Sequence record: PP813861.1
Length of the DNA stretch: 64,000 bases
Reading direction: 5' to 3' (one strand)
Under the pieces are notes generated by a model. The model worked only from the letters and a program-made list of their open reading frames with translations. It was not told the DNA's origin and did no database searches. Positions within the stretch are counted from its first letter, which is position 1. Every line of letters starts with the position of its first letter. Of the stretch, positions 2,826-24,404 are shown piece by piece. The position numbers and the translations under genes are program-made.

Positions 2826-4148
2826 TTACCTTACCTGGGAGGGATTATTTACTTGTTCTTGCGTAGGTCTTTGAATTGGACGCTGGTAAGCTTTTAATTC
2901 TAACTCGGTCACGAATACTAGTCGACCCATTACTCTGACTAAACCAGCAAGAGCATTACTAAAATCTGTTACAACGCGACTTACATTATTGATCATTAAT
3001 GTAATTGAATTAATGATATTTGAGATAGCAGGGATGCCATCAGGTGCATCAGGATCTTGAACTTTTGCTTGACGATTTCGCATATTAGATTGTTGTGCCC
3101 GAATCCTACCAGCTTGTTGACGATTAGTCTCGGCTAACTGCATTAACCTACCAAATTCAAAATCTAGTTTAGTTGCATAATCTTTTCTAGCATCTATACG
3201 TTTAGCCATTTCGCTTAATAATACTAACCGTCTTCCAATTGAACTCGTATCATTAACCTTAAAGGTATTGTTACCTTCAGGTGCATCCTTCATAGTAGGA
3301 ATAGTATAAAACTTAAAGGCAAAATCACGGACAGTATTTACTAAAAAATCCCAATCCCTGATCTCTTCAGTCTGTGTTTCAGTTGGCCCTGCGCCAAATA
3401 AAGTCTTATTACCTTGAACTGGCATACTACGATAAACTGTAGAACTTACTCTAAATCTATCATCTTTCTTAATAGGTACTGCACCCTTCATCCAGTTCTT
3501 AACATTAAACTTACTAAAGTCTTGTGCAGCTCTATCAGTCCATTTTTCATCAAATGATAATTTCCTAAGGATATCCGCTACAGATTGGATATACAAGAGT
3601 AGGGATTTATCATAGAAAGCTATCAAGTTGTTAACTTGCATGAGTATCGGATCAACTGTAGTCGGTTCGAATTTACCATCAATACTAAATCGTTTAGTAT
3701 TTTTAAATTTTAATTCTTGCTTAAATGGCTCATGCTTAATATTTTCAGCTCTTTCTAAAAGCATGTTTATTCGTTCAAGAGTACGTTGATTACCTTGTGT
3801 AATAACACGTGCATACTCTTTTAACTCATCTCGATGCTTTGCTTGGGATTTTTTCATTTCATCCCAGGTATTTCGTGCTGTCTTAGATAGGTCTTCTAAT
3901 GACACATTCTCAGTTTTTAGAATGTGTTCACTAACAACATCTTGGTTATCTGCATATTTTTGAAATAAGCCATCGGTATAGGTTTTAACTAAAATGTCTT
4001 TTTCAGTGCATTCTAATCTACTTTGAATATCTTCAATTGATGGCAATAATTCTTTTAGATATCCATCGCATGTAGCGATCATATCGACGGGGCTGTCCCC
4101 GTCGATTGATTCAAGTAAGACCGAATGACTAAGTGAATTATTAGTCAT
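2826..4148 (-). CDS. Virion head protein, gp92-like
   Basis: 440 aa, LLE/SLE motifs in the N-terminus; position in the head-gene cluster. Confidence 0.7.
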   Translation of the reverse strand: MTNNSLSHSVLLESIDGDSPVDMIATCDGYLKELLPSIEDIQSRLECTEKDILVKTYTDGLFQKYADNQDVVSEHILKTENVSLEDLSKTARNTWDEMKKSQAKHRDELKEYARVITQGNQRTLERINMLLERAENIKHEPFKQELKFKNTKRFSIDGKFEPTTVDPILMQVNNLIAFYDKSLLLYIQSVADILRKLSFDEKWTDRAAQDFSKFNVKNWMKGAVPIKKDDRFRVSSTVYRSMPVQGNKTLFGAGPTETQTEEIRDWDFLVNTVRDFAFKFYTIPTMKDAPEGNNTFKVNDTSSIGRRLVLLSEMAKRIDARKDYATKLDFEFGRLMQLAETNRQQAGRIRAQQSNMRNRQAKVQDPDAPDGIPAISNIINSITLMINNVSRVVTDFSNALAGLVRVMGRLVFVTELELKAYQRPIQRPTQEQVNNPSQVR

Positions 4149-6842: not shown

Positions 6843-10814
<3,972 letters not shown>

Positions 10815-21789: not shown

Positions 21790-22284
21790 ATGTCAAATAA
21801 AGCTAAAGAACCAACTCTAACTAAAGAACAGGAAAAGACGCTACGTCTATTTGAACGTGCAGTTGGAGCATCAGCTGCCGCAGCTGATCATATTCTTAAC
21901 CGCGATGGTTGGGATGTTGTCAATGTACTAGCAGGTTCTGTAGGTAAGCGTATTCTACAAACTGAAGTATTCATTAATCCAGTTATTAATAAGATCAATG
22001 AAATTATTCCGACGTTATCTGATCCTACTGGATTCCAAAAGAACCTACAAACAGTTATTGCTGACCTTAATCGACTAACTAAAATTATCAGTGTCCTATA
22101 TGCACAACATCAAGGTAAGGTTGGTCCGGCAAATAATGAAGATGAGCTAAAACTCATCGGTGAGCTTGTTACTAAATATACTGGTATTGAAGGTGCTATT
22201 GAACGCGGTATTGATGGTGTAATCCTAGCGATGATCGGCACTCTTCGAGAAGCTGGTTGGGACGAAAAACTAATTCAACAATAA
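21790..22284 (+). CDS. Hypothetical protein
   Basis: 164 aa, SD-like GGAG upstream, strong phage codon usage. Confidence 0.75.
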   Translation: MSNKAKEPTLTKEQEKTLRLFERAVGASAAAADHILNRDGWDVVNVLAGSVGKRILQTEVFINPVINKINEIIPTLSDPTGFQKNLQTVIADLNRLTKIISVLYAQHQGKVGPANNEDELKLIGELVTKYTGIEGAIERGIDGVILAMIGTLREAGWDEKLIQQ

Positions 22285-22295
22285 TGGAGTTTTAA

Positions 22296-23897
22296 ATGGC
22301 TACTGCTGACTTCGATAATGAGTACGATGATACTCCAGAAGAGAATCTACTAGATCAAATTGATGAGATCAATGCGCAACACGATCCTGACTCTAGTATT
22401 GAAAATAATGACGAGGTGGAAACTCCACCTTTCGTTCCTGATCAAAAAGAAATTAAACTACGTATTCCACGTAATGCTAAAACTGGAAATATTCGGGATG
22501 CTTCTGAACCGGCTATTAAAGACAGTGCTAGCATTCTTACTTTGCTACGTGAGAACCCCCAGACTGTTTATGATTTCCTGGATCACAATAAAGAACTATT
22601 TAAAGCATTTGCTGATAATAAAGTAGATGACACTAGTGATGGTGTAAAGTGGACAGCTGCTATTCTGGAGGGCTTAGCTCACTCTATTGTTGAAGATTCG
22701 CCAATTGGTGCAACTGCCCGAGAAGGCTCTGAATGGTCTAGTGAAATTCCTTATGGTGAAAAGATCATTCGACCTGGACGACCTGTATTTAATACCAGTG
22801 GTCGTAAAATGACCGATGATGAAACTCTAGTTTTCCTAACACGTAAAGCTAACATCGGTACGCCATATGATACTTTCCTACCTCATTCAGGTATTTGGGT
22901 AAAACTACGTGCACCTACTGGTACTGAAGTAGCTGCCCTACAAGCACGTCTAGCACAATTAAAGATCCGGCTAGGCGCTGAATCAAAAGGTATGCTGTTC
23001 TCAAACATGGCAGCTGTGTTACTTAACATGGTTAGTAGTTTAGCACTTGCATGTGTTATTCAATCCAACTATAAGTTCAACACCCCAACTGATCTAGAGC
23101 ATGTTATCTCAGTAGCTGATGAGCCGTTCTTGCATCACGCACTAGCGGCGACTATGTATCCAGATGGATTTAATTATAGTTATCCATGCATTGCAGATGC
23201 CAATACATGTAACCATATTGAAACAGCGAAACTTAATATGTCAACGCTTGTTCAATATGATCTACTGGCATTCTCAGAAGAACAAAAGAAATATATTGCA
23301 CGTAAGTTTAATGCATGTACTGAATCTGATCTTAAGACTTATAAAGAAGGATTCCGTATTGAAACTCAAGTAACTGAAATGTTTGGTGACGTTGGTGTTG
23401 TTCTTGAGATGTGTACAATTGCTGATCGCCGAGAGTCTGGTGATAGTTGGATTAACTCAATTATCGATATGACTCAAGGTAGTTTTAATGAACCAGTCGA
23501 TGGTCCGCAACGTTCTCAGTATATTGCACGTTTACAAAAGATCTCTATTGCCCGTCAGTTCTCACATTTTGTTAAAGAAATTAAAGTACGTGAAGATGAC
23601 GATGGTGAAAGTTCTGAGGATAATATCCGCACTGCAACTACTAACCGTGAAACTATTGAAAAGTTCTTAACTAATATTCTATCCACACCGGAATATAATG
23701 ACCGCTTTATTAATGCGGTAAGTAACTTTATTGATTCACAACTAATTGGCATGATTGCAATTACAAGTTGGAATTGCCCAGTATGTGAGTCACCTGCCGC
23801 TACTAAATTTAAAGAACGTTTCCCACACCTAATCCCTATTGACATGCTGTCAACTTTTTTTACTTTGGCGGCCTCGAAGTCAAACCGGATGGTGTAG
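22296..23897 (+). CDS. gp77-like protein; putative baseplate-hub/tail assembly chaperone
   Basis: 533 aa; LPHSGIWVKLRAP and WNCPVC recall T4 gp26/gp51-type proteins (recalled resemblance); ends 12 codons after a T7 slippery run. Confidence 0.6.
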   Translation: MATADFDNEYDDTPEENLLDQIDEINAQHDPDSSIENNDEVETPPFVPDQKEIKLRIPRNAKTGNIRDASEPAIKDSASILTLLRENPQTVYDFLDHNKELFKAFADNKVDDTSDGVKWTAAILEGLAHSIVEDSPIGATAREGSEWSSEIPYGEKIIRPGRPVFNTSGRKMTDDETLVFLTRKANIGTPYDTFLPHSGIWVKLRAPTGTEVAALQARLAQLKIRLGAESKGMLFSNMAAVLLNMVSSLALACVIQSNYKFNTPTDLEHVISVADEPFLHHALAATMYPDGFNYSYPCIADANTCNHIETAKLNMSTLVQYDLLAFSEEQKKYIARKFNACTESDLKTYKEGFRIETQVTEMFGDVGVVLEMCTIADRRESGDSWINSIIDMTQGSFNEPVDGPQRSQYIARLQKISIARQFSHFVKEIKVREDDDGESSEDNIRTATTNRETIEKFLTNILSTPEYNDRFINAVSNFIDSQLIGMIAITSWNCPVCESPAATKFKERFPHLIPIDMLSTFFTLAASKSNRMV

Positions 23898-24358
23898 TTA
23901 ATGATCTGAGATATAGTCGTCTTGAGGCCACTTTCAAGGAAGATAGTGGTCACATCCTACATCCAAACTTTGGTTATGATAAGTTAACTGAAGATGATAC
24001 ACATTTAGATAGACTATTATCGACAGTAGGGGCAGTAAGACCGTCTACAGCAGCACGTTTAACAAGAGAAGCATATCTACTTGATTACGATATCGGTTCA
24101 CCAGAAAACGGACCCATGTGGTTAAATAAGGTAAATCCTAAAGAGGACTTTATCGAAGGTGGGTTGAGAAGGAGACTGACTAGAGATTTCTTCAAGTATA
24201 AAGTAGGTAGCTTATCTAATATGTCATTAACTGAATTCTTTGAATTAGCTTATTCTGAGGTAGAATACATAATTGAATTATGTAGAAATATTACCCATAA
24301 TGAAGCTGTTAATAACAATAACCAGTTAAATGAATTAAACAAGCCGTTAACTAAATAA
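23843..24358 (+). CDS. Start-less 172-codon frame, probably reached by a -1 frameshift from the gp77-like gene (the track shows only 24116..24358)
   Basis: Open from the TGA at 23840-23842 to the TAA at 24356-24358. There is no ATG/GTG/TTG in the first 91 codons, and it overlaps T-TTT-TTT at 23855-23861. Confidence 0.7.
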   Translation, partial: HAVNFFYFGGLEVKPDGVVNDLRYSRLEATFKEDSGHILHPNFGYDKLTEDDTHLDRLLSTVGAVRPSTAARLTREAYLLDYDIGSPENGPMWLNKVNPKEDFIEGGLRRRLTRDFFKYKVGSLSNMSLTEFFELAYSEVEYIIELCRNITHNEAVNNNNQLNELNKPLTK

Positions 24359-24371
24359 AAAAAAATAAAGA

Positions 24372-24404
24372 CATATCCCCTCTCCATATGGAGAGGGGTT
24401 TATG
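24372..24404. terminator. Bidirectional hairpin
   Basis: CATAT-CCCCTCTCC-ATAT-GGAGAGGGG-TTTATG between convergent genes. Confidence 0.75.

Follow-up and report, generated by a model that had tools for sequence, protein, structure and literature searches.

Two overlapping frames at the gp77 locus

We analysed a 64,000-nucleotide stretch of sequence record PP813861.1 (the window), which belongs to the Pseudomonas phage vB_PaeM_FBPa36, a phiKZ-like jumbo phage, with 100% identity at the same coordinates. The element of interest is a candidate recoded gene on the plus strand at 22296-24358. It is made up of an open reading frame (ORF) of 533 residues, here called A (22296-23897, plus strand), which is the counterpart of phiKZ gp77, 201phi2-1 gp136, Goslar gp081 and the core gene cg18, and of an extension in the -1 frame, here called B (23861-24358, plus strand; 165 codons and a stop), which corresponds to phrog_12109. 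The two are predicted to form one expression unit with two products, and their synteny and frame relation are kept in all related loci. A preliminary description of the window had proposed a programmed -1 ribosomal frameshift that extends the gp77-like protein. The comparative evidence supports this central idea, and we consider such a frameshift in gp77/cg18 highly probable.

The codons of ORF A at positions 23853-23864 read ACT TTT TTT ACT, giving a run of seven T's at 23855-23861 (plus strand). This run constitutes the slippery heptamer T TTT TTT in the X XXY YYZ phase and covers the phenylalanine residues F521 and F522. After the second phenylalanine codon, ORF A continues for 11 sense codons and its stop. 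The -1 frame is closed by a TGA at 23840-23842; from 23843 on it has no stop until a TAA at 24356-24358, a total of 171 codons; both frames are thus open at 23843-23897 on the plus strand, and across the family the putative shift is bounded to the two phenylalanine codons and at most eight further codons. The first ATG, GTG or TTG of the -1 frame is the ATG at 24116, its codon 92, and it is preceded by 91 codons without any start. The ATG of A has a GGAG Shine-Dalgarno sequence at the usual distance; upstream of ATG 24116 there is only a weak GGA three bases away and no convincing Shine-Dalgarno sequence. At 38% G+C, the probability of a 171-codon open frame by chance is about 8e-6, and that of 91 codons without a start-like codon is about 0.012. 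The coordinates, heptamer phase, open -1 frame and 91 start-less codons given in the preliminary description all hold, as does its judgement that so long a stop-free run is unlikely by chance. By simple arithmetic the predicted long product has 522 + 165 = 687 residues.

Homopolymer runs are error-prone in some sequencing chemistries, and an apparent frameshift could in principle result from such an error or from recent decay of a longer gene into a frameshifted pseudogene. A further 46 phiKZ-level genomes match this region at 95-99% identity, and queries with A (to 23894) and with the -1 frame (from 23843) each align over their full length in all 47 phiKZ-level records. The seven T's are present in all four phiKZ-level genomes that were fetched, and the one- or two-base length differences among these four are confined to an intergenic run of A's after 24358. 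As full-length matches to both frames occur in 47 phiKZ-level genomes that were sequenced independently, the T run at 23855-23861 is, judging from these comparisons, not a sequencing error.

Conservation of the arrangement among relatives

The loci compared came from 16 named phages and one phage from a sea squirt, to which 71 IMG/VR loci found with the family alignment were added. Hosts of the named phages are Pseudomonas, Ralstonia, Escherichia, Salmonella, Erwinia, Serratia, Vibrio and Aeromonas. The phages include 201phi2-1, PhiPA3, PA1C, Psa21, Phabio and Noxifer; RSF1, Goslar, SA002, Ea35-70, PCH45 and SPN3US; Halocynthia phage JM-2012, Vibrio phage Yong XC32 and Aeromonas phage LAh10; and the phiKZ-level phages Wadjak 2 and AttikonH10.

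A slippery site followed by a -1 ORF of 149-180 codons was found in 88 of 88 readable related loci, down to about 21% identity in A. The downstream ORF is always in the -1 frame relative to A and always overlaps it. In the relatives, an in-frame TTT TTN lies 8-44 codons before the stop of A, and only one locus, L036, differs (GTT TTT). Automatic scoring of 81 loci gave at least 100 open -1 codons in 80 of them, the remaining locus running off its contig; counted from the site, the +1 frame was open for at least 100 codons in 2 of these loci and the 0 frame in none. Four loci outside the search pattern have T TTT TTG (three) or GTT TTT (one) and -1 ORFs of 162-175 codons. In tblastn searches the -1 translation matched PA1C/PS119XW, Psa21, PhiPA3, Phabio, Noxifer, 201phi2-1 and others at 34-40% identity, the matches starting at query residues 1-6, inside the overlap, and spanning two annotated genes.

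The preliminary description had suggested looking in relatives for the T run with its -1 overlap and for a single fused ORF. A slippery site with the -1 relation is kept family-wide, including PhiPA3, 201phi2-1, SPN3US and Goslar. As to a fused ORF, a search of 1.84 billion cluster representatives yielded 1,236 relatives of A, and no fused A-B ORF was found among the best 150 of these, in which the match ends about 30 residues or less from the C-terminus. The 20 database proteins closest to A are 485-633 residues long. With the same arrangement in every distant relative, and with fused forms absent from these 150 diverse representatives, we regard the explanation by sequencing artefact or gene decay as having a next to negligible chance of being correct.

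Codon pattern at the slippery site

In the protein alignment of A, neither F521 nor F522 varies. For codon statistics at the site we used 55 lineages, non-redundant at 80% identity. The first phenylalanine codon is TTT in all 55, and elsewhere in the same genes TTT accounts for 307 of 930 phenylalanine codons (33%). If the lineages were independent, the log10 P of an invariant TTT would be about -33; this assumption overstates the significance, and the case is still overwhelming. For the second phenylalanine codon, 39 lineages use TTT and 16 use TTC. TTT TTY is preceded by T in 40 lineages, by G in 11 and by A in 4, making the heptamer canonical in 40 of the 55. This codon pattern is as one would expect from tRNA re-pairing, because the A-site tRNA has to pair with TTT once it has shifted, no constraint falls on the last base, and the first base is of help but dispensable.

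The T run is reduced to five T's in PA1C, in Noxifer and its relatives, and in L036, with the phase of the run unchanged. The upstream stop of the -1 frame directly abuts the site in some lineages, and in others the 0-frame stop follows only eight codons after it. Between these two bounds the T run is the only conserved slippery sequence, and the interval in which the putative shift could take place is therefore narrow across the family.

Coding evidence for the extension

Over the whole of B, substitutions between moderately diverged pairs are concentrated at the third codon position. The most informative part is the start-less stretch, which lies after the stop of A and before the first ATG of either partner. 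Here substitutions are distributed 71:47:181 over the three codon positions (chi-square p = 6e-23), and codon differences are 130 synonymous to 80 non-synonymous. In the L074/L077 pair there is no ATG, GTG or TTG for 100 codons, yet substitutions are distributed 13:7:42. These patterns suggest that B is translated where initiation of its own would be impossible.

Another possibility, and the one adopted in all GenBank records inspected, is that A and B are two separate genes, with B starting at a non-canonical codon or by reinitiation after the stop of A and the overlap being incidental. Some relatives do have a start-like codon 8-25 codons past the site. Among the lineages compared, however, the first start-like codon of B can lie anywhere from 8 to 135 codons past the site; the conserved independent start for which the preliminary description had also proposed looking is absent, and the methionine at 24116 of the window aligns with leucine in most relatives. 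The long start-less parts noted above, in the window as in L074/L077, are conserved and evolve as coding sequence, and no start codon occurs in the -1 frame from its upstream stop up to the site. Independent genes would also be expected to vary in relative frame, whereas the relation is -1 at every locus. We consider separate initiation of B very improbable indeed.

Conservation of the B protein begins at the site itself, with Tyr or His (47 of 55 lineages), then Pro, then Pro (31 of 55) and Glu (34 of 55), and the -1 frame upstream of the site shows no conservation. The 0-frame tail after the site also keeps particular residues: Thr in 38 of 55 lineages, Leu at +2 in 53 and Lys or Arg at +6 in 51. 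Because the 0-frame tail and the -1 continuation are both conserved, the short and the long products are probably both used.

This bears on another explanation, in which shifting is near-obligatory: almost all ribosomes would shift, the long protein would be the sole functional product, and the 0-frame tail would be a by-product. B is indeed kept as universally as A, and the 0-frame tail is short, only 8-44 codons. The conservation of Leu at +2 and of Lys or Arg at +6 in this tail speaks against a by-product, as does its position in the structural model of A, where it forms the end of the C-terminal helix. High efficiency would normally need a strong stimulator, and none was found; moreover, were the fusion all that counts, some lineage should have acquired a simple fused ORF, contrary to what the best 150 of the 1,236 representatives show. 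Near-obligatory shifting thus seems very unlikely to us.

Stimulatory elements and polymerase slippage

Stimulatory elements are common, not obligatory, at -1 frameshift sites. We folded the 80 nucleotides downstream of the site in 13 phages with tools that do not reach pseudoknots, and obtained z-scores of +1.1 to -3.0, mostly near zero, with only Psa21 standing out. RNAalifold predicted no shared pair among 18 Pseudomonas-clade sequences, there was no Rfam match at the site, and no Shine-Dalgarno-like motif was present upstream of it. The preliminary description had seen no strong downstream stem, in agreement with the folds, RNAalifold and Rfam. Since no stimulator was found, the efficiency of the shift is perhaps low or differently driven; it may be low, or it may depend on a pseudoknot, on the nascent peptide or on a phage factor. 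In the Pseudomonas clade (loci L004-L009 and L017-L041), whose sites frequently have G or A ahead of the T run, the 25 bases past the site are unusually conserved. Dual coding accounts for this conservation at least in part.

The long product could also arise by transcriptional slippage, in which mRNAs of altered run length, made when the phage RNA polymerase stutters at the T's, are translated normally. Six or seven consecutive T's are present in the window and in most relatives, no ribosomal stimulator was found, and the non-virion and virion RNA polymerases of phiKZ are unusual enzymes whose slippage behaviour is hard to assess. Productive polymerase slippage is usually seen on longer homopolymers. 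The family lacks what would characterise a transcriptional slippage site, namely a long homopolymer present in all members irrespective of phase: the -1 ORF is kept with only five T's in PA1C, the Noxifer clade and L036, and the run is always in heptamer phase, with a constrained first codon and a free last base, which is a signature of tRNA re-pairing. Because lineages with five T's exist and the phase of the run is fixed, ribosomal slippage is favoured over polymerase slippage, which we consider unlikely.

Proposed decoding of gp77/cg18

A programmed -1 ribosomal frameshift would mean that gp77/cg18 is decoded in two ways. Most ribosomes would stay in frame 0 until the stop at 23897 and make the 533-residue protein A. 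Others, a fraction of the total, would slip back one nucleotide with the pair of tRNA-Phe on TTT TTT (23856-23861, with a T before) and would then read the -1 frame to 24358, giving the first 522 residues of A joined to the 165-residue, largely helical B, about 687 residues in total. The shift would swap the end of the last helix of A for a proline-containing linker and domain B. If A is a baseplate-hub assembly factor, the tentative guess discussed below, frameshifting would supply a fixed minority of molecules with an extra interaction domain, as lambda G/GT does in tail assembly.

Sequence comparison shows that phiKZ-like phages, Chimalliviridae phages and relatives conserve the slippery site together with its -1 relation, the lack of a start and the coding nature of B. 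The ribosomal nature of the shift, its efficiency and the function are inferences. Several points weigh against the frameshift. The preceding base is G or A in 15 of the 55 lineages, which implies imperfect P-site re-pairing, and one lineage has GTT TTT instead of TTT TTN. Neither the folds, RNAalifold and Rfam nor the search for an upstream motif revealed a stimulatory element near the site. The seven T's of this particular phage could support polymerase slippage as well. Finally, the long product is a prediction from comparison; the Grad-seq supplement has no gp77 entry.

Fold and possible function of protein A

A belongs to phrog_4585, whose function is unknown, and has no Pfam, NCBIfam or PDB sequence match. 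Table S3 of Prichard et al. 2023 (PMC10299810) lists it as core gene cg18, a "hypothetical protein" (Goslar gp081, phiKZ gp077, RAY gp267). The gene cg18 is not limited to chimallin-encoding phages, and B is absent from the portion of the core-gene list in Table S3 that was examined (PMC10299810).

A confident AlphaFold2 model of A has a predicted local distance difference test score (pLDDT) of 78 and a predicted template-modelling score (pTM) of 0.81, with residues 1-41 disordered. The slippery site lies in the last helix of this model, residues 517-532. The 41 N-terminal residues (22296-22418) are acidic and are the least conserved part of the protein; relatives of A range from 453 to 656 residues in length and differ mainly in this N-terminal part. 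Four cysteines, C298, C305, C494 and C497, are nearly invariant, which suggests a zinc site.

The preliminary description had likened A to the T4 hub chaperones gp26 and gp51. Both T4 proteins are listed as chaperones of hub assembly (PMC3004832); according to this source, gp51 is essential, works by an unknown mechanism and is absent from the particle. In a Foldseek comparison with predicted viral structures (BFVD), the model of A matched its own family first and then proteins named "Baseplate hub assembly protein, bacteriophage T4-like", "Baseplate hub assembly chaperone" and "baseplate hub subunit". These hub matches have E values of 3e-5 to 3e-3, a probability of 1.0, target TM scores of 0.5-0.58 and root-mean-square deviations of 7.5-11 A, with predicted structures on both sides. 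One member of the A family is itself labelled "Baseplate protein" in the Foldseek results.

The likeness is thus supported in part, by predicted structures; in sequence it is weak. Both T4 proteins, taken from NC_000866, belong to the Pfam family PF12322 (T4_baseplate), whose model scores 177 bits for gp51 and 216 bits for gp26. When a 167-sequence alignment of A was compared by hhalign with relatives of gp51, the probability was 48% and the E value 2e-4 over 49 columns around a strand-plus-CPxC motif; against gp26 the probability was 20% over 27 columns at the gp26 C-terminus. Both values are weak. The CPxC pair of A is the sole segment that profile comparison aligned with T4 gp51 and gp26.

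A number of results count against a hub function. Foldseek of the A model against the PDB gave no match. None of 20 members of the A family matched PF12322 even at E <= 1, and the family has no NCBIfam match. The hhalign probabilities are just 20-48% over a short CPxC segment, and the gene for A lies outside any tail or baseplate cluster. The functional assignment of A draws on predicted structures only. Indirectly in favour of a hub assembly role, neither gp136 nor gp135 in the 201phi2-1 record carries the note "identified using mass spectrometry" that their neighbour gp138 has, and no PDB chain matches A by sequence. Our best guess, which we put forward with reservations, is that A could be a baseplate-hub assembly factor with a T4 gp26/gp51 fold that is absent from the finished virion.

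The model of B is helical and of low confidence (pLDDT 58), with structural matches to its own family only, and Pfam, NCBIfam, PHROGs, PDB and hhalign revealed no known function or relative. The preliminary description had compared this added tail with a motif of tape-measure chaperones, a resemblance that found no support, as the Pfam, PHROGs, PDB and hhalign searches returned nothing of known function. We also considered whether B might complete a split gp51-like domain and rejected this idea: the C-terminus of A aligns with the C-terminus of gp26, and hhalign of B against T4 gp51 and gp26 gave nothing.

Comparison with known recoded genes

Long-tailed phages are said to share a conserved tail-assembly-chaperone frameshift, reportedly described by Xu, Hendrix and Duda in 2004. 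Like lambda G/GT and P2 E/E', A/B would combine a -1 shift at a slippery heptamer near the 3' end of a morphogenesis-type gene with a start-less second ORF, yielding two products with a common N-terminal part; in both cases the arrangement outlasts sequence similarity and no strong stimulator is needed. Unlike the lambda proteins, A has 533 residues rather than roughly 100-150, and A/B adjoins a block of helicase and RNA-polymerase genes instead of the tail tube and tape measure. In the 3-10 kb fetched around A, the neighbours are gp78, gp79, small ORFs, the gp75 helicase and RNA-polymerase subunits, and no gene is annotated as tail tube or tape measure. Neither A nor B matched a tail assembly chaperone family in Pfam, PHROGs or NCBIfam. 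Membership in the lambda G/GT family, which the comparison made in the preliminary description would suggest, is not supported, given the size of A, its neighbours within these 3-10 kb and the missing family match. It is plausible by analogy that A/B works like a G/GT without being one, and the comparison with a chaperone remains a plausible one.

The predicted fold of A suggests a likeness to T4-like hub assembly proteins, a CPxC motif lies at the sole profile-aligned segment, and A gives no sign of itself in virion data (the mass spectrometry notes of 201phi2-1 and the PDB searches). A differs from T4 gp51 and gp26 in having no PF12322 match among 20 members, in being twice as long and in not lying beside hub genes. 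T4 gene 26 also gives two products, by an internal start; the T4 genes fetched carry no annotated frameshift. In the T4 locus compared (L087), gene 26 is located at 7803-8429 on the minus strand, and the second, internal product 26' shares its C-terminus.

T7 gene 10A/10B and the bacterial dnaX tau/gamma pair are classical cases of -1 recoding in phage and host. As would be the case for A/B, they give a fixed ratio of two protein forms via -1 slippage at a homopolymer-rich heptamer. However, in dnaX the shift leads to a shorter product and relies on strong stimulators flanking the site, T7 10B is a capsid protein, and neither system is related to A/B in sequence or context.

Annotation and neighbouring features

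In GenBank this region of PP813861.1 is annotated as two hypothetical proteins, 22296-23897 and 24116-24358, the phiKZ counterparts of which are PHIKZ077 and PHIKZ076.4. Two separate genes are annotated in all 19 GenBank records inspected and a joined coding sequence in none of them. The second ORF of the window (24116-24358, plus strand), an 80-residue homologue of PHIKZ076.4, begins at the first ATG of the -1 frame. Because its methionine is not conserved and it has no good Shine-Dalgarno sequence, this ORF very probably represents no more than the distal part of B, with the first ATG taken as its start. Each phage fetched has B annotated from a different start, and annotated lengths range from 80 to 155 residues; in locus L003, from AttikonH10, short minus-strand ORFs are annotated inside B at 3290-3400 and 3455-3547. 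The varying starts and the minus-strand ORFs look like gene-caller artefacts of the missing start.

Upstream of A, at 21790-22284 on the plus strand, lies a homologue of gp78 with 164 residues (phrog_14050, function unknown). Nearly all phages inspected have a gp78 homologue directly upstream of A and in the same orientation, often abutting or overlapping the start of A; the exception is JM-2012, where a metallophosphoesterase takes its place. The gp78 homologue is likely to be a functional partner of A.

The stop of B is directly followed by a run of A's and then by a hairpin (24356-24398), with convergent small genes on the minus strand beyond. The hairpin itself (24377-24398, without strand assignment) is a G+C-rich palindrome of nine pairs, flanked by T runs on either strand, and resembles a bidirectional terminator that separates the A/B unit from the convergent small genes. 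A/B would then be one transcription unit closed by a terminator-like hairpin right after B, and this arrangement supports a frameshift joining the two frames.

Implications for nucleus-forming jumbo phages

A full-text literature search revealed no published frameshift at the gp77 locus, subscription papers on the proteomes of 201phi2-1, phiKZ and SPN3US being outside the scope of the search, and a 2025 review of nucleus-forming phages says nothing of frameshifting or recoding. Literature matches to "gp77" were set aside as they refer to the numbering of other phages.

A broader and rather speculative possibility is that the recoding is universal and ancient in cg18 of all phiKZ-like and nucleus-forming jumbo phages and yields a two-form hub assembly factor. 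A/B would then represent a second, independent frameshifted chaperone pair in an unrelated family, with no recognisable RNA stimulator and possibly aided by phage ribosome-binding factors.

If the frameshift is real, one of the 68 core genes of nucleus-forming jumbo phages is misannotated in the records inspected and probably in many more. PHIKZ076.4, 201phi2-1 gp135, Goslar gp082, SPN3US gp40 and others would not be genes but the C-terminal domain of a longer form of gp77, and 60-90 N-terminal residues of B would be missing from protein databases. A deeply conserved recoding site would be added to a group of phages in which we found none described, and the variants of this site (T, G or A before TTT TTY; five to seven T's) would offer a natural series for the study of stimulator-free -1 shifting. 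The two-form decoding would also provide a handle on an uncharacterised core protein, which is possibly the missing hub-assembly chaperone of these phages.

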